Source of the DNA: Rhodosorus marinus CCMP1338
Taxonomy: Eukaryota; Plantae; Rhodophyta
Direction of reading: 5' to 3'
DNA: 64,000 bases
NCBI GenBank assembly: GCA_029953675.1
Contig: JAMWBK010000001.1
Span: 2,666,001 to 2,730,000 of the forward strand
Within the stretch, counting starts at the first letter, position 1; every line of letters begins with the position of its first letter. Below are positions 4,080-34,900 of this stretch, in pieces. The position numbers were made by a program, and so were the translations under genes. The notes beneath the pieces are model-generated. The model worked only from the letters and a program-made list of their open reading frames with translations. It was not told where the DNA came from and ran no database searches.

Positions 4080-6400
4080 CACGGATAACTCTCCCCAGTA
4101 TCCCTCCCTCCATATAAGTCTACATGTTCACCAAGTCTCCAGAACAAAACACCCCCACCCCCACCCCCTTTTCACGTGGTTCATAAACACAGATTCCTTA
4201 ATATCCAAAACAATTTCTTCTATCAGAAAACTATTCTACTCTTAACAATCTGGGGGTTAGATATTGACTCACACACCACTAGGATGAGGTGCAACGTGCG
4301 TTCTTGGCTTTGTTTTTTGCTCAATCCACACACACCCGAGAGACCCACTTCTGCCCACCAACTTCATCATATTGAACCGGAAAGGAAACACCAAAAAAAA
4401 ATTGTTATCCCCCCCTTGCGACTCTCACTCCTCTGTTCTTTATCAATATGCATCGGGGTCGATAAGATAGAAATATTAGAAGAAAAATCTGAGGTCGGGG
4501 GGTTTATGCCTAGCAAACCATTAATGTTCGGTAAATTTTAGCCCGTACATTTTTGCCGCGTCGATGGATCCTTGTTTAGATAAAATAAAAACATCGAATG
4601 CCGCCATATTTTCGGGTATTGGCTTGATTTTAGAATTTTTCATTATCCTTTTTCACGCTCAATTTCGTTTTCGGGTTTCCAGATCGAGCAAGGTCACGTT
4701 GGTAAAAGGGGGTGTCGAGTTGAAGCTTGTTTGTTTTATTTTGATATATTTAGGCTAATGTATTTTTATAAATCGATCGTTGATTTTGGGGGGTTGGAGG
4801 AGGGCCTAGCATATCTTGCAAATTTTTTTCTTGATTGAGGAGAGAAATACTTTCTGGAAGGCTATTCGTCCGTTTTGCATAATCGTGCGTTTTATCTTCC
4901 ATTAAAAGCGATCGATTCACAAACCTGAACTTGGTTTTTCATACATTTACGAGGTTTCCGCAAAATATATCAAAATATAACCCCAAAAGGAAATATTTTG
5001 CCCATCATCGGATGGTGGGGAAAAAACCAGAACTCGGATTTTTGTATAATTCAATTAATTTCGACCAACGAGCCCTTTTGACCGCTATGATAAGTCGGAT
5101 TCGATTGGACTAGAAGTCTCCTTTGCATTCCCCATTGGGTGATAATAATGATTGAATGATGTCGTACGAAAAAAGACAAAGTATGATCGGAGATTTTTTT
5201 TCGGTTCGATGGGGAACTCTTCTTCACTGACGAGCAACAAAACACTCTTGCCATTGAAAAAAAGAAAGCCACCGGTCTTTTTTGCTTAGTTCACAGAAAT
5301 ATTGGAGAAAGGGGAAATGGGGGATGTCGTACTGGATCGAAGAAACCCAAAACCAGTTTAGAGAATATAATTGAGCATATTTCCAGGTCACTTCCACTGG
5401 CAATCGAATATGAGCTTGTAGACTTAGTTAGCAAATAAATTGACAATTATTTTTGAGCGGTGTTTAGCATTCTGAGCCTCTTCGTTGGCCACTAATCACC
5501 AATCATATTCGTTCCCTCTTCAATGGAGCTTTCCGCGCAAGGCCCAAGGCCAACATTCCAAATCTTCCTATTTCTTCAAAACAACAAAAGAAACGCAATC
5601 ATCCTCTAAATAGAGCCAAATTAGACATGTGTACTGGCGTGAATGTGTGTAAGGCGTGCCTGCCTCATCCTGACCGAGAGAAACGACAAGAAAAAATGAG
5701 CAAAACTTTATCTACGAATAGAGCATCCCATAGCAGTAGGATTTTGGGCCAGCGCCTTTTGAAGTGCGATATTCGTCCTTCCTGCATAGTTACCACTTTT
5801 TTCTTATGAATTTTCCCATTTCCATATTCTCTTAGGGACTGTTAATGCTAATAGGGATAGTTCGACCGCTTCGGGGGCGACTTCTTCTTGATGGACATTC
5901 TCTGGTTGCATCAAAGTTAAACAACCAAAATTCAAGGAAATGAATCCTTCCCCTCTTTTTTTTTTCCTCACCCATGGTGATCGATCGTTTTAACTAGGGA
6001 TCTTCTTTAGATTTAGACTAATTGATCATATTTTGTGCAAGTATATAGCTCTTAATTTTCACTAGAACAAATAACCCATCAATGGAGTACATAATATAAA
6101 ATATTTTCACCTAGTTTGGGTCACTATCCAGACGTTCTCCTTTCAACCCCCTGGCTAAGCATTATTCCATTCCATAAAAAAAAGGATTCGTTTTCTTTGG
6201 ATTTGCAAAGAATAGACCTGCATAGCCACTTCAAGCAATTACGTACTGACACACTTCCGACGCGTATTTTCGTCCCAAGTCAACAGAATATTTACCCCTA
6301 CCCTAAAAAACTGACATGTTTATCCTCAAGGAAAATATAAAATACTAATTATTAATCCGGTTAGATGGCGGTTGTGTCTTGAGACGCTTTGCTTTACTTT
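4080..6400. promoter_or_regulatory. Long AT-rich intergenic/upstream region
   Basis: A/T homopolymer-rich, no credible ORF, upstream of the minus-strand membrane-protein gene. Confidence 0.4.
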
Positions 6401-7800
6401 TCGTTAAGAGGTCGATTGCGAGGATTGTGGGCAAAAAAAATGAAACCGCCGCCTGAGTGAATTCAGAACAAGTCAATATGCTTTGCCAATTCTTGCTCGA
6501 GGTGCGGGACGCTTTTAGTGAATGACGCCCTTTTGACTTTTTGGGGGACGGAGCTGATGTTTTCTGATAGTAGGCTCCCGCAGCACTGAGCCAGTTGCAA
6601 GATTTTGGCGGGCTACACGTTACTGGTTCGAAATTGGATTCGGTTCGTTGTTCGGGCTACTGTTTTGAGCGAGGTTTACTCAACGTGGACGTTTATACAC
6701 TCGAGCGTGGAGATTGGGTCCTTGGACCTTGAAGAGGCAAGCACAAGAGGGTGGGCTGCTTAGCGGAACGGCGCTTTGAGTTCTCACCCGAGGGAAGCTG
6801 TAAACAAGTCTGCACGCAGTGGCTGGGGAAGATGCGTTGGCTCGGTTACCCGACGCCTGGTCGTTTCTGCGCTCGGAGCGCGTGGAAGAGTCGTTCTTGC
6901 TCCCCTCAACGTGAGGCGCATACTTGTCGGTGTAGAGGTCGTCCACAGAGAATCGCAGAGCAGTAGGCATTGGTTGCCTACTTCCCATTGTACGTGGACA
7001 ACCTAACTTGACGGGAGACTCACAACGAAACCGCCCGCTCCGTCGCCAGCCTGTGGAGGAAATTCACTCTTTTCACCGTCGGCCCAAAGCTCCCCCATTT
7101 GGTACTGAAAAGGCCCGGCGACACAATGGGGAACAGTCTATTTGGGTGACTCGTATCTTTGCAAAGATCACGAACTCTGAAGCTCTCAATGACTACAAAT
7201 TACTTCGGACCGCGACCCGGACTGGGGTCTTACCTAGTTCGCGTAACACTTGACTTACGGTGGACCCTCTCATAGTGCCGGAAAAGTCCACTTGTCATAG
7301 CCTCTCCTCACAAGGCCAACGGAGACTGGCCCAGCTTTCCACCAAGTAGTGCAACTGAGTTAGCTGGTGTCCTTGACAGCCTGTCCATCCATGTCTTTGA
7401 ACGGCAAGTCATGTACTAAGCAACATGCCCGAAAACATTCAAAATTGAAGCCGTCGTTGGTTCCTACTGTCATTCCCGGTTATAGCGGTCACTCCCATGC
7501 CAATTTGCGCTGACATTGTTTGCAAGCGCGGAATACTAACAGAACTGTCAAGAAGCATTGCTCATGGAATTCTCACTGAACATCGAAGACGGATCGGCAA
7601 ACCAAAACAAGCAAATTTTATCACAGCGTATTCGAAACCCGTTCAATCGGCAGCAACCCGAGGAAGCATGGGACGGGTCTTGTCCCAACCCATGCTTCCC
7701 GCACCGACCGTCCCCATTCGAGAATATCACATTTCCCAGATATTTTTGAGATTTCTCAATGCCCTTAATTGAGTGGGAGGGCGTTTCACATCCGACGAAG
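6400..7800. pseudogene. Coding-like (~50% GC) segment without intact ORF
   Basis: Composition resembles neighbouring exons but frames are interrupted; no homology recognised. Confidence 0.3.
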
Positions 7801-25124: not shown

Positions 25125-26204
25125 TTAGAACCGTGCGTAGGGAGCGAAATCTGGCTTTCTTCGTTCTAAGAACGCATCCCGTCCTTCCTGTCCTTCTTTC
25201 GATTGATAGAAGAGCCGCGTAGCTTCTCCAGCGAGCTGGGACAGCCTGTGGGAGGAGAGACAGGAGTTTGTCGGCACCGGTTAGGTAAAGACGTATACGA
25301 GTTTCGTGACAGTAATCACTGTTGGGAGAGAACGCTGCATACCCTGCTTGACCATCGCAATCAGCATTCAGGGCCGCTTTTAGACAAGCGATTGCGGTTG
25401 GGCTCTTCTCCATAATTTCCCGGCACCATCGAACCGTTTCTGCCTCGAGCTCTTCCAATCGAACCACCTTGTTAACAAGCTGTATGCAAATCGGATCGGA
25501 GCACAAAAAGGGGGACGCTGAGAAGACCCTACGGGATTAAGGACAACCTGTTCGATTGGGCTTACCCCCATTTGAAACGCCTCTTCGGCATTGTACTGTC
25601 TGCACAGAAACCAGAATTCTCTTGCGCGTTTCTGACCGATGATTCGGCTCATATAGCTAGAGCCATATCCACCATCAAAGCTGCCGACTTTCGGGCCGGT
25701 CTGACCGAACCTGGCGTTCTCTGCTGCAATGGTAAGGTCGCACACCATGTGGAGAATATGGCCCCCGCCAATGGCATAGCCCGCGACCATTGCGATGACG
25801 GGTTTTGGGAGTCTCCTCATCAGAATATGGAGGTCCAAAACTTCCAATCTCGGAACGCCATCTTCTCCAACGTAACCACCATCACCCCGAATGGACTGAT
25901 CTCCTCCGGAACAGAACGCCTCTGTCCCCTCACCGGTCATGATCACCACGCGAGTATTCGGATCATCTCGAATGAAAAGAAACGCCTGCTCCAACTCCCT
26001 CAACGTCTTCGGCCGGAAGGCATTCCGTTTCCACGGCCGGCAAATCGTCAACTTCATAATCCCATCCCCGCTAAACTCCACCCGAACATCCTCAAATCCA
26101 CGACAGCGATCCACCAAAGCCCAATTCACCCCTCCTCCACAAGATTCCACCGCCTCAATCCCCATAGTTCTCCCTATTCCCAGAAAACTCCTACAGCGTC
26201 TCAA
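25125..26204 (-). CDS. menB: 1,4-dihydroxy-2-naphthoyl-CoA synthase (start uncertain)
   Basis: [56 protein letters not shown]; 3 exons; ends [10 protein letters not shown]. Confidence 0.95.
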
Positions 26205-26499: not shown

Positions 26500-27200
26500 G
26501 TGTTTTTTTTTTATATTCGACTGGCCCAAAAAAAAGAAAAAAGGTTCCGCTACAAAAATAGAATAAAATATATTTTTAATCCATATTCCTTTTTTATTCA
26601 TCAATTTCTAATACTGAAGTTATTAATTATAAAACTTATCTCAAGTATTTTAGTTTTATGCGAAATATTTTGATCTACACCCAATAATAATGAGGTAATA
26701 AATTGAATATACGATATGTTATGAAGTAGTAGTTTTTTAAATTTATTATGAATATATATAGATGCAAATATAAATATTTACGTTGTATACCAATATTTTA
26801 TATTTTATATTCTTCCATTGGGCAACAGCAATAGGATAATATTGAACTGAATAAATGATTTTTTTATATGTCGATATTTAATATTTAATACTAGTACTGT
26901 GTACAATAAATATAGGTCTTATACATATTATTTACATATATTGATTATGCTTAAATATTTAATTTTTCAAATATCTTGAGTATAAACTATTGATTGAAAA
27001 AAGCCTTTTTTTGCGAATTGAGATATCGGGCAAGCAGTTTTTCCTTGTTGTTTTAAACTTTTCTTGAGGGTAGTCCTTTGCGGAGATCATTTTAGCAGAA
27101 TTCGTCTCACGAAATTGTTAGATTAGAGTTTTAAATGAAAAACAGAACACAGTCTAAATGATTGGTTTCGGGCTGTTAATGATTGAACAGGAGCTTGGAG
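26500..27200. promoter_or_regulatory. Very AT-rich divergent promoter region (menB / RBR-Pol lambda locus)
   Basis: Most AT-rich stretch in this part of the window, between divergently oriented genes. Confidence 0.55.
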
Positions 27201-27359
27201 GTCTAGATGAATGTGAGGATGCTGAGGAGCCTTCTCGGACGCGCTACGGGTTGTCCAGCCTGTCCTTCTGACCTGTCTTGGCCTTTATGGAAATTTGTAT
27301 CCGCTTTTACAGACAGAATATGTGTTCCCCTAGTCATTTTTTTTGTTTTTTTTTCGAAG

Positions 27360-28127
27360 AACGCTTCTGTGGCTCCTTCGGTGTGAGCCCGTGCTGTTTT
27401 GGCAGTCAGGTCATTGCTTTCGGGGGGGGTTTTCTCGATCGCAAGAGATGTGACTTATCTGTGAACGTGCGTTCTGGTCGCCGCTGAGCAATCCCGTCTC
27501 ATATCAGAGCTTTCTTTCAGATAGTCTAGCCCTGGAACCCTGGGCTCGAAGCGGATCCATTCTCGTAGATGCCATCTCAAGGAACAAAACGGATACCAAC
27601 GGGGGCGTGTGCGGCGACATTCATATGATGTAGAATAGAAAACCCAGAGAGTTTTTATTAGATGAGAGAGCTCGTCAGTTTGCTCGAGGAAATCCCTTCG
27701 AACCTGCCCATTCCCTCAAAACCATGAGACCCCTCAAATACGCGAGTTGCTTATGAGGGTATCCTCATGTACTACATGGTTTTGGAGGTCGAGGGCGTTC
27801 GTTGCGAATGGAAGAGGACTGCTTGTTGCAGCGGAGAGCCCTGTCAGATCATCAGTACTGTGGTGTGCTTCTACTGTCGCGATTTATTCTTTTTACTAAA
27901 GGAATCTAGGTTTTCAAATTGGGGAGTTTGTTGAACGTCCGCCCCCGTATACGCTGGTCAAATTGTCGATGAAGTTCGAGAGGGTTTCTCCTCCACATCT
28001 GAGGAGCAAGCATGAGCATCTGACCAGGATGAGATCCCGGTCGAAGAGGCTGAAGAGCTAGATTCATAAGAAGCTGCGGTCGTCTGGTGGCACCTGGTTT
28101 GCTTCCTGTTGTTGAATTCTGTTTCAC
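27360..28127 (+). pseudogene. Disrupted retinoblastoma-related pocket-A relic
   Basis: AYEGILMYYMVLE (cf. RB/RBR LYYRVLE), RTACCSGE (cf. RCMLACSAE), LGSLLNVRP + YTLVKLSMKF across a frameshift (cf. ILNVLNLKAFDFYKVIESF); in-frame TGA 27725, extra C in run 27942-27946, TAG 28059, TGA 28113. Confidence 0.6.
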
Positions 28128-29146
28128 ATGGAGCTGTTGGAGGGAATCGGCGCCAAAGTGCTTGACGGGATGAGCGAGAACGCGCAGTTATCGGTTATGA
28201 AAACAGCATCAGAGTCGTTCCGACTCTCGCGTGGCTTTCCCGCGCTGCAAGGTGAAGAGGCTGAGGTTTTGGCCGCCTGCTCTGTCTACAGCGCTGCCCG
28301 GTTTCGCAGGCTTAAGGTGGACCTGGGCATGCCGAAGGTGACCTTTAAAAGCATTCTGGAAGCTGCGGATGAGTTCCACTTTGCCGGAAAGAGTGCCCAA
28401 GAGCTGGCCTCTTACTACAACGAACTATTTCTGCCCGCACTTCGAGGTAATTTCAGAAATACCTTCCAAACGAACCAGGACACGACTCCACAAGCTTTCT
28501 CTAACGATCAAGCACGGAAAGAGTCGGAATATGGCCCTTCTCATAAGAAAACGAGAGTGTCCGATGAGTTTTTCAGTACTCCGCAACGCCTTCGTATTGA
28601 ATCCGAGCGCTTCCTCGCAGCATCGAAGCCTTCAGTCGAGCTCGAGAACTCAACACAATCCGGAAAGGTGTCCCAAAGCAATCAATGCACCGCACCTGGC
28701 ATGAATGACCGCGTCCCAAGCGACAGTGCGTGCGATGGCCCGTTGGAGAAGGAGGAAACCAAACCAGAATCATCAGGTGAAACAATCGAAGCTGCTCCTG
28801 CCACCATCCTCGAGCCCGAGGCGGGGATTGGGAACCCGACAAGGCCTACAGGAGGAAGCGATTCAATAGCTGCTTCCTCACGCTCTGTTGTCCCGGGAAA
28901 CGCCAAGATCGAATCCGCGGAAACCATTGAGGCGGCTGTGGATTCAGAAGTGAGATCCGAGATGAAGAAAACTGCTTTAGGAGGGAGTGACCCGATAACT
29001 AATTCCACGAGGGCAGCTGATAAGAGAGAAAACAATAGTCAGGTGGTCACCCTGTTTGAGAACGCGACGAACACGGCGGCTGAGAGCATGCAACAACATG
29101 AACTGATTCGCGCCGCGAAGACGCTCCGAGATCTTGGCGTTGGTAC
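28128..29146 (+). CDS. RBR: Retinoblastoma-related pocket-B domain plus long S/E/T-rich linker; probably the first exon of the Pol lambda transcript
   Basis: KVLDGMSENAQLS (cf. plant RBR VRINGMVERLQLS), VLAACSVYSAAR (cf. IMMCSMYGICK), VTFKSIL (cf. LTFREII), ELASYYNELFLPAL (cf. DIITFYNEIFIPAV); stop-free for 382 codons. Confidence 0.8.
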
Positions 29147-29186
29147 GTATCTTGACTCAGGCACCTTCCCTATTTTTCATCTTAAG

Positions 29187-31799
29187 AGAGAGCGTGTGGG
29201 TTTGGCCTGTTCGAGCAGATCTTCGCGAGGGATCAGCGGAAGACGTGTTGGCTACGCAGAGCGAGAAGGTCGATGACTCTAAGCTATTTGCACGTAAGAA
29301 CCCTTTTCTCTCGTCTTGTGCGACTTGTTCAGGGCCTAATGAAGCCTAACTTGCTCACCGACAGGGCACAGTTTCTTCTTCGTCAGCGGCGGGAGTGGTA
29401 TGTCGGAGAAACGGAGGACGCTACTGGTGAAGATCGTGTTGGACAACGGCGGCGATGTCGAATCTGACCTATCCGTGCCAGAGGGTTCATGGACTCTGGT
29501 TGTGGTTGCAGAATCAGAGCTATTCCTCAAACAAGTCCCCGGAATGAGAGCCCTACTAGACATTCCGCTTGTGTTCTTCCACACTCCTGAGTGGATCATC
29601 GAGTGCAAGCGGTAAGGAGGTGTATGAGTATCTTCGCAGCCAGCGGGTCACTGCCTTAACTCAAATGAGCCTCGATCAACAGGAGTAAGTCGCTTTTGAG
29701 TCACGCAGAGTATACAATGAGCAATTTAGAGTCGAGTCTGGAGACTTCAGAATACGCGGATGTGAATCAAGAGGGAGGAAACGACACCAGAGGTATTTGT
29801 TTGGCTTCTCGAGCACGCCAGATTCCTGTCTAGAAGCCTGAACCCTTCACCTCGTGGCATTGACAGCACAAGGATGGGCGTGTGAAAGAACTCTAGAATC
29901 TAAAACGAAGATGCCGGAAGCTAACCGGAAGATCATGGAGATCCTAAAGTACCTTGTTGGCACCTACGATCTTCTCGGAGGAAGAGAGAACGAATTCCGG
30001 AAGCTGGGAACTCAGAAGGCAGTTTCTGCGATACAGAGCTTTCCGACGGAGATCAAAGAGTGAGCTCCTTACCATACCCGACCAGATCGCTGCCATCCAC
30101 CTTTTGTCCGGAGTGTCTCTGAAACTGGTTTACACTCTGCGGAAACTGGAATGGAAACACCTCTGTTAGGCTGAAGGACGTCCGTGGACTGCATGGCATT
30201 GGCTCAGAGACTCTTTCCAAGATCGAGGAGATCATCAATACGGGAACGTGTCGCAAGGCAGAAGCGTTCAAGGTAAGCATGCGATTGCTCTGCTTTAGTC
30301 GAGGTGTTTGATCCTTTACAGTTTGGGTGTGGTCACGCTGGTTTCGAGGACCTTTGACAACCGTTTTTCACACAGTCCTTCCTGGACCAGTTCGTCAATG
30401 TGAAGCAAACGAATCTGATGTTGTCGACTGTGCTTCGTTTCTGAACTCCAGGTCGATCCTCACGTCCACACGTTGCGGGTTTTTGAAGGGATTTGGGGTG
30501 CAGGTTCGTAATTCCAAGGTGATTCGGGTGAGAGCTTCTGAGCGGTTGCTTCGTTGCGCTGAAGGCTAGGCTATGAATGGAACAGGACCAACGACGGCGA
30601 ACAAGTGGTATGCTTGTGGTCTCAGGTCATTGGACGACTTTCAAGAAGGCACGAAGGGCTACTCGCTTCTTAGCAAACAGCAGAAGATCGGCCTGAGGTA
30701 TTATGACGAGTTCAACAAGAAGATTCCGCGACAGGAGGTCGAGGTACGTACTCACCAGTTCCGCGAACATTCTCTTCGGAATTGGGAACTGACACAGAAG
30801 AGGAAACAAAAATCCGAGGGTTTCGTAGGAAATCGAAAACGTCGTGAGAAGCTCTGTCGATCTCCTCGGGGAAGGCCGTTTCCAGTCAATCACCTGTGGA
30901 TCTTATAGAAGAGGAAGAAAGGCGTGTGGGGATGTGGATATGATTCTCACGGCCAACCGAGAATATATTCAAGGTGAACGACGTCCCAATCGTCCGGTCA
31001 TACTGGAACAAAGCACGGCCACCGCCGAGATTTATGGGGGAGGAAAACAATCTACGGAAACGTCGGCCTAGACCTGACCGCTGTGGTTGATTCCGTCGAG
31101 CTTCGACTCTTATATGGACTGTGCATGGACTAACAGTTCACGAACCGTCACTCTACGCGCCTAGGTTTTCTCGCGTTAGTTATTAAGGACTTGAGGGAGA
31201 AAGATTTCATAACCGATGACCTTGTGACGATCACTATGGAAGGCGAACAGAAATACATGGGTAAGGGTGAAGGTTGCCTCTTGTGTCCTGGACTCCTTGA
31301 ATCTGATAGCTGGTTGGTTTGCTCTCGACTCAGGAGTATGCCAACTCCCGGGAAAGCTACATCGGAGGTTGGATATTATCATCGTTCCCACTGATGAGCT
31401 GGCATGCTCGCTTATCTACTTCACGGGTTCCGCCTACTTCAACCGGTCCGTACCGCGACCTTCTCTACCTCACATTGCGGCCCTACTAAGGAAGACGAGC
31501 TTTTCTTATCTCCCTCTCAATTGTTCGATCAGATCGATGCGGAAAAAGGCAAGAAACATGAACTACTCTCTCTCACAGCACTTCATTGCTCCAATCCAGA
31601 CGCAGAAGAACAAGGTCACTTGGACGGTAAGGAGTCCAGGACATGCCAGACCTTTTCCTCATTTTCGCTTCTAGCCCGGGCTCTGAATCGTGTTGCTCTG
31701 GCCCCACAGGGTGAGCGGATCAAAGTCAACACTGAAAAGGACGTATTCGAGATACTGCAGATCCCTTACCGAACCCCGGAAGAGCGCGATCTTGGATAA
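29187..31799 (+). CDS. POLL: BRCT domain + family X DNA polymerase (Pol lambda type)
   Basis: BRCT (SKLFARHSFFFV...[15 protein letters not shown]...[10 protein letters not shown]); Hh[26 protein letters not shown]; [13 protein letters not shown]; [17 protein letters not shown]; [10 protein letters not shown]; [13 protein letters not shown]; [19 protein letters not shown]; about 11 exons reconstructable with canonical splice sites. Confidence 0.93.
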
Positions 31800-31972: not shown

Positions 31973-34900
31973 TCACCCAATGCTGGCCAAGCGGCCAACC
32001 GCCCGCTGGCTTGCGACGCCTCGGAGCTGTTGCGTTGGGGGGGTTCTAAATCGCGGCTTCATAACGGTCGAGGCCAAAGGTCATACGTTTCTCAAGCCAG
32101 GCGAGATTGGCTTTCTGAACCAGTCTGTAGGAACTTCGAGATCCGGATGGCAGTGAACAAATATGGCGTCAGTAGCTGAAAGGGCTGTATAGGGCTCGGG
32201 CATCGTGTAGACATATGGCAGCGAGTTCTCTCCATCGTAGATTTCTCGATACTCCATTTCTGCCCCTGTGGTCGGACAGATGTAAGACTGGATCCCTATT
32301 GAGGAAAGAGTCGGAAACCCAAACGCGAAGGTGAAAAAAGCTGCGATCGCCTGAGGAGCTTCGATTTGGAGCATACCAACGGATTCTCCAAGCAGGGTGC
32401 TTATTTGTCCGTCAAGGATCCAACTTGAGCCAGTGTTTCTCGCACGCCGTTGGCTGCTATCAAGTCCGAAAAGCACATCGCCTCTTGACGACGCACGGGT
32501 CTCGTCATTGAAACGAGTGTCACGATTCCAATTGGGCTTATTGGTCGATTCCTCCCGTATTCTCACGGGCGCATCGCCAGAACGGTATAGCCCTACGGCG
32601 ACGCAGTTGATATTCGCAAGCCTAAATCCGTGTACCACGGGAGAGCGTTCACGCAGAGTTAAAAGAGTCGCTCCGGGTATTACCAGGAAATGGCACCACG
32701 GTCATACCGCATACCTGACAAACGCGTCTCGATAAATCACCGTACCAGTCGATCCAGAGATCCATTCTTCCGGTACGTCGATTAAACGCCACCATAAATT
32801 ATTCTCCGCGCGGATTTGTTGATCATCGACCACCATTCTACTGAAGAGGAAGTCAATGAAACCAGCCATGTTATAGTCACTGAACATTCCAGAGAGAAAG
32901 AGAGAGCACCACTGTTAGGTATCGACAAGCACTCTCCGAGTGAAGGACCGCTGATGAGAGTAGCCCCGCTCACCGAACCATCATGCTCACCACGTGAGTG
33001 CTGATAAAGATCTCGCCAGACGCGAATCGGATCCCTTCGAGCGTTCCTTCATGTCGTTTGTGATGGCTTCGGGCCCTTTCAGCTCGAGCCGCCGTTCTCC
33101 TTCGTACCGAACCTAGTCGCCCACGAAAAAGAAAATGTCGAATCAAAACCCGGCCGAAGAAATCACCTTCTTTCCTGAGGACTCACTCTTCGGCCCCGTT
33201 TCCTCTCTTAGATTCGTGGTGAACATGTGTTTCGCTCGGTGCAGGTTGTCGAAAATGCTAGTTCCGTTGAAGCTTCTCATCCACGAAGACTTTTGACCCA
33301 GGCCTGACATGCTCTCCGTGCTCTGAGAGGGCATTCCTTGTTCGAAGCGCGAAGGTCCTGCTGCAAAATCAACTCCACCGCGCTTGGGGAGCATCATCGG
33401 GTGGTGGATTTCTCCAAGTTGCACTCCTGTTAGGGTAGACGAGCAGCCTCGCGAGCTTAGCTCGATCTGAACGTAGAACCAGGATCATGTGTTCTTCTTC
33501 CGAAGTCCGCTACTATACCTTTTCGGCGCGCCTTCACCGGGGGTCGAAGAAGCTGAATAGAGTCCTCCGCATCTACGACCGAACATACGTAGGTAGAGCT
33601 GTTCTCAGGTAGAAGCTGATCCAGGGTCATGACAGTGAACAGTGCCTTTGCGTCCAAGTCTTCTTGGTTTTGCCACTCCTCCATCGCCAAAAGAACGATT
33701 GAAGACGCGCTTTTGAACTGTGCCTAGTGTTACAAACCATTCGTGCCGAATCGATCAGAAATCTGCTCCATGCATATTTGACTTGCGGAACGACCCAAAA
33801 TTACTTTTTGAAGAGTGTAAATGCTCTGACTGCTTCCTTCGAGCAGGTAGAGGCTCCCCCGATAGCGCGCCATCTGCTGTTCAAAGTCGTCCGGGAATTT
33901 TCTGTGCACAGCGACCACCGGAATGTTCCTCTTGTGGCCGCTCCGTCGTCTCCATAGCCTTGAGATAAACCTCTCAAGGTGAACCAACGATACGCTCCCA
34001 ATCAGGCACACGATAAGATGTCTCCTCAAATGAACGGGCAAATCAGTATTGCGATAGATCTTAAAGTCCGTCTCCTTCGGATTTAACGCGTTCTGCAGTC
34101 TTGTTGACCCACTAAGGAAACCCGATTACAAAGCGAATCAGTATAAGAGGGTTTGAGCGATGTCCTGATCCCTTCTGCGAACCTTGCCATAGGCGACTTA
34201 GTGTACAGGTTGTTCTCAACATCGATCGAAAGAGCCTAATAGATGCGATGTAAATTGCTTAAGTGGGAGCCGAAGGACGGGGCTCGTCTAGGGCTTTCTG
34301 GCGGGTTTTACCTTCGAACTTCTCCTCTTCTTCTGCTCCAAGCGAGACGCCAGTTGAAAGAGGACGATCGTTGAGAAGCTTTTCCCAGTCCGATTATATT
34401 CTACAGATCCTAACTTACCCGTGCCGACACTTTTCTGTTGGGTAGTCCAGGGAGCTCTCGGGGCGAAAGGCTGGGGCTGCCGAATGCATAACTTGGGCCG
34501 ATATCGATGCTGTTGTCCGAGGAATACCCAGAGCTATTTCCTTCCTCAAACACTGATTTCGTTGTCAGCGAATCTACAAGGTTTTCGAAGAAGAAACGTT
34601 TTAAGTCCCTCCCGCAACCAGAAAGTGGACCTTTTGTCGTTGAGAACACTCACTCGACTGTTCTGCATCCAGTGCTGGAGGCTGGGAGCTACCACCGCGC
34701 GAGGAACCCGCTTGGGGAAGCAGCGGCTTGCCTGGGTCCTCAGGCTCCAAGTGTTGGCCATCTTTCCTCAAACGATAAGACGCCATAGATCTGTTCCAAA
34801 ATGACCGGGCTGGAGTCTGTGAGGCTTCCATTGCCCCTCCTATCCTCACAATGGTACAGTTTAGGGCGCGCCTACCTGGCCAAAGTCCTCGCTATCGGCT

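Follow-up and report, generated by a model that had tools for sequence, protein, structure and literature searches.

We analyzed a window of 64,000 nucleotides of the genome of the red alga Rhodosorus marinus CCMP1338 (GenBank assembly GCA_029953675.1, contig JAMWBK010000001.1, positions 2,666,001 to 2,730,000 of the forward strand), which was published under accession JAMWBK000000000.1 (PMC10250338). Positions 28128 to 31799 of this window, on the plus strand, are occupied by a single gene of 13 exons with a coding sequence of 2,490 nt (829 codons); the exons were assembled by eye and checked by translation. The gene encodes a DNA polymerase lambda (Pol lambda) that carries, ahead of its BRCT-like domain and family X polymerase (Pol X) core, a long N-terminal extension. 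This extension consists of a linker and a predicted cyclin-box domain that probably resembles box B of the retinoblastoma (RB) pocket by descent.

The first exon lies in an open reading frame (ORF) of 382 codons (28128 to 29276) that begins with ATG and is preceded by an in-frame stop at 28113 to 28115. It encodes the cyclin-box domain (aa 1 to 110, 28128 to 28457) and most of a low-complexity linker (28458 to 29142), which ends in exon 2 (29219 to 29293). Exons 3 and 4 (29365 to 29611 and 29683 to 29792) encode the BRCT-like domain and a short linker. The polymerase core occupies exons 5 to 8 (29867 to 30059, 30170 to 30272, 30452 to 30503, and 30586 to 30743) and exons 9 to 13 (30829 to 30973, 31165 to 31260, 31334 to 31445, 31533 to 31626, and 31710 to 31799), with the stop codon at 31797 to 31799. 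All 12 introns have GT-AG boundaries and range from 71 to 191 nt. An initial sequence-only reading had pointed to four segments in the 382-codon ORF reminiscent of RB pocket B, and all four are present: LDGMSENAQLS (aa 12 to 22), CSVYSAAR (aa 51 to 58), TFKSIL (aa 72 to 77), and YYNELFLPAL (aa 96 to 105).

The same reading had proposed a fusion gene made of this ORF and the BRCT-Pol X exons downstream of it. They are one transcribed gene. The GenBank model KAJ8908925.1 (P0003; locus tag NDN08_005625; 856 aa, Rhodosorus marinus) already joins them, and so do two transcript-derived proteins of the sister strain MMETSP0011, one of which (P0126; 831 aa, UniRef A0A7S3E6Y6) is colinear with our whole model, including the C terminus, while the other (P0004; 602 aa) has the same junction between exons 1 and 2. 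UniRef gives both Rhodosorus proteins, KAJ8908925.1 among them, the name DNA polymerase lambda. A transcript contig from the sister strain (L003) matches 27351 to 29140 and then 29218 to 29294, with a nucleotide-level junction at 29142|29219, and also matches exons 3 and 4; exons 5 to 13 follow the gene model and the Pfam matches described below. The adjacency of the two parts is kept in a distant relative as well.

Intron 1 thus mapped is 29143 to 29218 (76 nt, GTACGT...CAG, phase 1), and the junction after DLGV is common to P0003, P0004, and P0126. A short intron joining the two frames had been predicted, and the join proved real, with the donor at 29143 correctly named; the proposed acceptors at 29186 and 29188 are unused. 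Both of the proposed introns (40 nt, 29147 to 29186, and 46 nt, 29143 to 29188) are in phase and are contradicted by L003, P0003, P0004, and P0126. Since the remaining eleven introns span 71 to 191 nt, one of 40 to 46 nt would be atypical here.

Two further features had been cited in favor of a single gene, and both hold. The frame of exon 2 contains no ATG back to the upstream stop at 29104 to 29106, leaving the BRCT frame without an upstream start of its own. The GC content stays at 0.49 to 0.53 over 29143 to 29364, with no promoter-like trough between the ORF and the BRCT exons. The sole AT-rich trough (26601 to 27000, GC 0.20) lies upstream of the entire unit, between the Pol lambda gene and a divergent enoyl-CoA hydratase (ECH) gene. 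The latter, on the minus strand at 25380 to 26204 across the 20%-GC spacer, matches Pfam ECH_1 with an E value of 2.5e-52.

The C-terminal 470 aa form a complete Pol lambda, with a BRCT-like domain, an 8-kDa/helix-hairpin-helix (HhH) region, fingers, palm, and thumb, as had been surmised for the downstream part. Four Pfam domains of the core score above their gathering thresholds: HHH_8 (aa 501 to 574, E=7.7e-12), DNA_pol_lambd_f, the fingers (aa 591 to 642, E=9.7e-19), DNA_pol_B_palm (aa 644 to 750, E=6.7e-28, covering profile positions 1 to 112 of 113), and DNA_pol_B_thumb (aa 758 to 826, E=1.3e-19). The model contains GDVD at aa 685 and RRLD(I) at aa 742 in the palm and YFTGS at aa 760 in the thumb. 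From what is known of Pol beta and Pol lambda, we take GDVD and the third Asp, in RRLD, to be the palm catalytic aspartates and YFTGS to be the steric-gate motif. Judging from its domains and motifs, the polymerase core is complete and apparently active.

Among the best 120 database matches outside Rhodosorus, all that carry a name are Pol lambda (40 to 44% identity); animal Pol lambda proteins reach that identity over about 70% of the query. The shared plan of a BRCT-like domain, linker, 8-kDa/HhH region, fingers, palm with GDVD and RRLD, and thumb with YFTGS..FNRSMR is that of human POLL, plant Pol lambda, and yeast Pol4. The BRCT-like domain (aa 359 to 456) occupies the position of the BRCT domain in orthologs, many of which carry PF00533 or PF16589, and differs from them in scoring below the Pfam gathering thresholds (BRCT_2, E=6.8e-4, 20.3 bits against a cutoff of 27.3; BRCT, E=0.024). 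A further difference lies in the 355 extra N-terminal residues, made up of the 110-aa folded domain and the linker. Orthologs among the matches listed are about 340 to 700 aa long, and none has an extra N-terminal Pfam domain.

Transcripts and the GenBank model depart from our model at a few positions in the polymerase part. The acceptor used in L003 ahead of exon 5 lies 9 nt upstream of that in the window (the equivalent of window position 29857) and adds the residues LTA. L003 also keeps the intron equivalent to 30504 to 30585, which cuts the ORF at 602 aa and yields P0004; the full-length P0126 exists in the same strain. At the 3′ end, KAJ8908925.1 has an intron from 31743 to about 31814 that drops the conserved C terminus of the thumb and the stop at 31797 to 31799, and the model runs on to 32049. 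This end is probably mispredicted, and P0126 supports the stop at 31799. Just past that stop, a minus-strand ORF of 185 codons (32081 to 32638) has no Pfam match.

The N-terminal domain has no Pfam assignment, and its fold was approached through a predicted structure. An AlphaFold2 run with four near-identical Rhodosorus sequences gave a pLDDT of 59 and was not relied on; with a distant relative (P0124, described below) added, pLDDT rose to 88.5 with a pTM of 0.83. In this predicted structure, helices span aa 2 to 11, 17 to 35, 45 to 63, 73 to 79, and 90 to 112. The top 50 Foldseek matches were mostly cyclin-fold proteins, including the TFIIB core, Brf1/2, and cyclins K, D1, H, and C (probability, 0.96 to 1.0; TMq up to 0.68). 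As modeled, the domain is a single five-helix cyclin box, a superfamily to which both boxes of the RB pocket belong.

Within this superfamily, the closest sequence relatives of the domain appear to be the B boxes of RB-family pockets, with plant-type retinoblastoma-related (RBR) proteins nearest. The comparison targets (RB, p107, TFIIB, and cyclin A2 boxes) were verified letter by letter against PDB entries. A plant-type RBR fragment served as a probe only and was then replaced by the real sequences that it retrieved, namely, 44 loci with RB-family B boxes, two of which (L014 and L016) are RBR transcripts of nearly full length. A metagenome scan for plant-type RBR also returned two far more divergent RB-family B boxes from eukaryotes (L045 and L046) that are 37% identical to the probe and keep DIITFYNE(V/M)FI.

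In profile-profile comparisons with the domain alignment (A3), hhalign matched human RB box B with a P value of 0.0014 over 57 columns in the structural register and p107 box B with a P value of 0.036 in the same register. When RB box B was shuffled 400 times, the score always fell short of the observed one, and P0124 alone matched human RB box B with a P value of 2.7e-4 (40% identity over 35 columns). The signal rose when diverse real B boxes were added and when plant-type sequences were used: a ten-sequence RB-family profile gave a probability of 67% (P=5e-5, 56 columns, aa 46 to 108), a plant B-box profile gave 63% (P=7e-5, 53 columns), and the best single RB-family sequence (L034s) gave 86% (P=4.8e-6, 53 columns). 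Eight of ten RB-family B boxes, each PDB verified or from a real locus, gave P values of ≤0.0013. Control boxes (RB box A, TFIIB repeats 1 and 2, and cyclin A2 boxes 1 and 2) gave probabilities of ≤1.1% and P values of 0.05 to 0.5 in short, off-register alignments (for the two TFIIB repeats, 0.048 and 0.35). Neither 300 column shuffles nor 300 residue shuffles scored above 18.3; the observed scores were 28.4 and 35.4 (z of 8.4 and 11.8). A hidden Markov model (HMM) built from B boxes ranked the four real domains 1, 2, 3, and 5 among 1,004 sequences, 1,000 of which were shuffles.

The resemblance is visible in the motifs. The domain is collinear over aa 46 to 108 with box B of RB, p107, p130, and RBR, and at a relaxed alignment threshold the collinearity with the ten-sequence profile extends at low confidence over aa 6 to 112. 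CSVYSAAR corresponds to C(S/C)xYG(V/I)(A/C)K, VTFKSIL to LTF(R/K)EII or LKFKIIV, and YYNELFLPALR to FYNE(V/I)FIP(A/S)VK or FYNSVFMQRLK. The Rhodosorus domain is shorter, about 110 aa against about 130 to 150 aa for box B; the stretch from the TFK motif to the FYN motif has a shorter loop and helix. We regard a specific relationship of the domain to RB box B as likely, and the remote homology, with 53 to 60 aligned columns, as one of moderate strength.

The register of these alignments also places residues of the domain on the cleft through which RB binds LxCxE peptides. Human RB residues Y709, K713, F721, K722, V725, Y756, N757, and K765 contact LxCxE ligands (PMC11720896, Table 1), and mutation of N757 abolishes LxCxE binding (bioRxiv 10.1101/2022.06.10.495386; PMC1762320). 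In the family-profile register, their counterparts are Y54, R58, F73, K74, L77, Y97, N98, and R106, respectively, and the codons lie at 28287 to 28289 (Y54), 28299 to 28301 (R58), 28344 to 28349 (F73-K74), 28416 to 28421 (Y97-N98), and 28443 to 28445 (R106). Of these residues, R58, F73, K74, Y97, and N98 are invariant in A3, including P0124 at 33% identity; Y54 is replaced by F in P0124. The Rhodosorus protein contains no LxCxE motif itself. We suggest tentatively, from the alignment, that the domain might bind LxCxE-type peptides, and we would not call this probable.

Several results weigh against descent from RB. The Pfam check fixed beforehand for the pocket-B claim, with RB_B (PF01857) and RB_A (PF01858), found no match at E≤10 in the ORF, in the 108-aa domain, or in three relatives, and the 1.1 kb upstream of the ORF was likewise empty, with no RB_A, RB_B, or other Pfam domain in the three plus-strand frames of 27000 to 28127. 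(The sole subthreshold Pfam match was LXG, which we treated as noise.) A HMMER search of 1.84 billion (1.84e9) representative proteins returned no RB protein, and hmmsearch and phmmer comparisons of the domain with PDB sequences returned no RB. Foldseek listed no RB chain in its top 50; TFIIB and cyclins ranked best, all with E values of about 0.1 or worse. The confident hhalign alignment covers the last three of the five helices only (aa 46 to 108), and the equivalence of F73 and K74 hinges on which of two alignment registers holds. TFIIB repeat 1 also has the Y...R...FK pattern. The strongest motif, YYNELFLPAL, is a single helix, and how misleading a lone helix can be is seen in Protein A, where this profile also picks up one that is unrelated. 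Finally, the RB hypothesis was chosen after the sequence had been seen, which makes the directed P values optimistic. The pocket-B resemblance first read from the motifs therefore stands in part: hhalign (63 to 86%, against ≤1.1% for controls) and the kept cleft-aligned residues favor it, and Pfam, HMMER, and Foldseek find no RB.

Some matches from these searches were set aside. The PDB matches were engineered Protein A repeats reached through one helix (FYEILHLPNL; summed E, 5.8e-6) and were rejected as chance. Two candidates from the HMM search, one with HMA-like repeats (P0123) and one with helical repeats (P0125), were repeat-driven false positives.

Whatever its descent, the Rhodosorus Pol lambda is not an RB protein, because it has no box A and its domain falls below curated thresholds. 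Unlike RB proteins, it lacks the spacer and the N- and C-terminal RB domains as well as box A, and hence the E2F site; unlike RB box B, its domain escapes detection by Pfam and HMMER. E2F-type repression cannot be inferred because pocket A is absent, and E2F binding by the domain is not expected without box A. Human RB box B needs box A for stable folding, whereas the Rhodosorus domain stands alone.

Relatives of the domain are few. Outside Rhodosorus, the HMM search of the 1.84e9 representatives gave one accepted relative, P0124 (E=8e-7), a protein of 197 aa that occurs in two Logan assemblies. A word-indexed search with profile A3 found only P0124, and a metagenome scan with A3 found nothing. 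P0124 is 33 to 35% identical to the Rhodosorus domain, with a matching start (ME.LE) and in the same position. Its 9.2-kb contig (L004) carries, in order, an ECH gene on the minus strand, the domain, a low-complexity ORF of 262 codons, and a BRCT exon, at which the contig ends. This is the order (domain, linker, BRCT) of the window, and it answers the earlier proposal that the adjacency be sought in relatives. The BRCT exon is 47% identical to that of the window, and the ECH neighbor (5964 to 6590) has the same orientation and 73% protein identity. An 80-nt intron (GTAAGG...CAG) would connect domain and linker in phase; this point is weak, as many such combinations exist. Between the window and P0126, identity is 94% in the domain, 73% in the linker, 89% in the BRCT-like domain, and 93% in the polymerase core. 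The architecture thus predates the genus, or at the least these strains, and is so far confined to Rhodosorus and one probably related organism.

We consider it probable that this gene encodes a Pol lambda with a lineage-specific N-terminal extension, built from an RB-box-B-like cyclin box, a linker, a BRCT-like domain, and a Pol X core. We postulate that the N-terminal domain is a detached pocket-B module, whose origin may lie in the partial duplication of an RBR gene or in exon shuffling from it. The module would serve as a docking site for LxCxE-type peptides and would tether or regulate the polymerase through a partner protein. Pol lambda usually works in gap filling during end joining and base excision repair, and the BRCT-like domain and core would presumably do the same here. 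By inference only, the most likely role of the domain is peptide docking, by which the polymerase would be recruited or regulated.

A bolder version seems doubtful to us. It holds that the domain is a true free-standing pocket B from the alga's own RBR with a working LxCxE cleft, which couples Pol lambda to LxCxE-bearing partners such as D-type cyclins, histone deacetylases, or other chromatin proteins, such that repair synthesis would be docked to or gated by the cell cycle machinery and retention of intron 1 would yield a polymerase-less decoy. If the domain were a detached B box with an intact LxCxE cleft, it would be the first pocket-B module known outside RB proteins. Box B could then fold and be selected for without box A, and structural and evolutionary studies of pocket proteins would gain a minimal LxCxE reader of 110 aa.

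The accessory BRCT domain of Pol lambda decides where and when the polymerase acts, and an extra docking domain would amount to a natural experiment in the recruitment of a repair polymerase. The reach of the finding is narrow unless the architecture turns up in more lineages. The gene itself is already deposited and public; its N-terminal domain is unannotated, and the combination of domains has not been described previously. A literature search on Pol lambda in red algae and on the plant B-box motif returned nothing relevant and no such architecture.

An alternative hypothesis is that the N-terminal domain is an orphan cyclin box, similar to that of TFIIB, a cyclin, or ORC6, with no descent from RB and with RB-like motifs that are convergent or generic. 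Such a box might bind DNA or a CDK-like partner rather than LxCxE peptides. The structural ranking speaks for it: TFIIB core repeats head the Foldseek matches, followed by cyclins K, D1, H, and C and Brf1/2, and the TFIIB/Brf core repeats and cyclins K, C, and H are the best structural matches to the predicted model (TMq, 0.5 to 0.68; root mean square deviation, 2.6 to 4). The sequence of TFIIB repeat 1, which was verified, reads aCLYiAcR...RTFKEI, which makes Y...R...FK not unique to RB, and the Protein A match shows that noise exists at the level of motifs. ORC6 entered the list only in the search with the first, low-confidence model, as a chain at rank 35. Failure of the RB_B profile and of the proteome-scale search fits this view too.

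Sequence profiles point the other way. TFIIB and cyclins have no significant profile similarity to the domain, with off-register alignments, and the B boxes match in a consistent register with a signal that grows as diverse and plant-type boxes are added. The Y-N pair of the last helix (RB Y756/N757) and the next basic residue are absent from TFIIB on our reading of the sequence. The Rhodosorus domain also differs from TFIIB and Brf in having a single box where they have two and in lacking a zinc ribbon (Pfam finds neither a TFIIB nor a zinc-ribbon domain in the protein), and its net charge is about neutral, with 13 basic and 14 acidic residues, which is atypical of a DNA-binding cyclin repeat. 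We judge the orphan box possible and, on balance, rather unlikely.

Transcripts from another R. marinus transcriptome raise a different question, whether the upstream ORF is mainly expressed as a stand-alone protein of 363 to 382 aa, from an intron-retaining or prematurely terminated mRNA, with the fusion as a minor isoform. Two contigs of 1,444 nt (L001 and L002), about 83% identical to the window at the nucleotide level and corresponding to 27813 to 29232, read through intron 1 to a TGA just past the acceptor, giving an ORF of 363 aa. Moreover, L002 has GCTATGT in place of GGTACGT and so has no GT donor, and this variant may be unable to make the fusion with this donor. Both contigs weigh against a gene that is always spliced into a fusion. 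The unspliced ORF of the window is itself open for 382 codons, to 29276, and the gene caller found a closed ORF of 197 aa in L004. Retention of intron 1 may thus yield a stand-alone protein of domain and linker, which in the window would have 382 aa and no polymerase.

As the main product, such a protein seems improbable to us. Both L001 and L002 end 4 nt after the stop, at a point 14 nt beyond the acceptor, and we read this end as a break in the assembly where a splice branch lies. In the first bases of exon 2, they differ from the window only in having CGT for CGC, a change that is synonymous in the spliced frame and makes the stop in the unspliced one. A full-length spliced product of 831 aa exists in MMETSP0011, and Pol lambda made separately would have no start codon from which the whole BRCT domain is translated. 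Very improbable is the view that the extension is nonfunctional baggage or an annotation artifact and that translation starts downstream, for example, at a Met in the BRCT exon: the poorly conserved linker and the very long leader with its 13 upstream ATGs, a sign of unusual translational control, speak for it, but the domain equals the catalytic core in conservation (94% versus 93%), is kept with matching start and position in a relative whose ECH neighbor is 73% identical, and is predicted to fold confidently, and an internal start would, on our reading of the sequence, remove the first BRCT strand, SFFFVSGG.

The leader just mentioned is at least 777 nt long (27351 to 28127, plus strand) and unspliced: over 27351 to 29140, L003 and the window are colinear. 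For a compact genome such a length is unusual and hints at translational control or at an overlapping transcript. Within it, a conserved upstream ORF of 30 codons (27969 to 28061) ends 66 nt before the main ATG. It encodes MKFERVSPPHLRSKHEHLTRMRSRSKRLKS followed by a stop, and its length, stop, and 66-nt spacing are kept in L001 and L002, which come from another strain, with 6 of the 30 residues differing.

Downstream of the cyclin-box domain, the linker of about 245 aa, which has no Pfam match, is presumably disordered. The initial reading had conjectured that such a polymerase could be recruited to LxCxE-type partners or regulated by cyclin-dependent kinases (CDK). The linker contains the single full CDK consensus site in the protein, TPQR at aa 151 (28578 to 28589), which P0126 shares.

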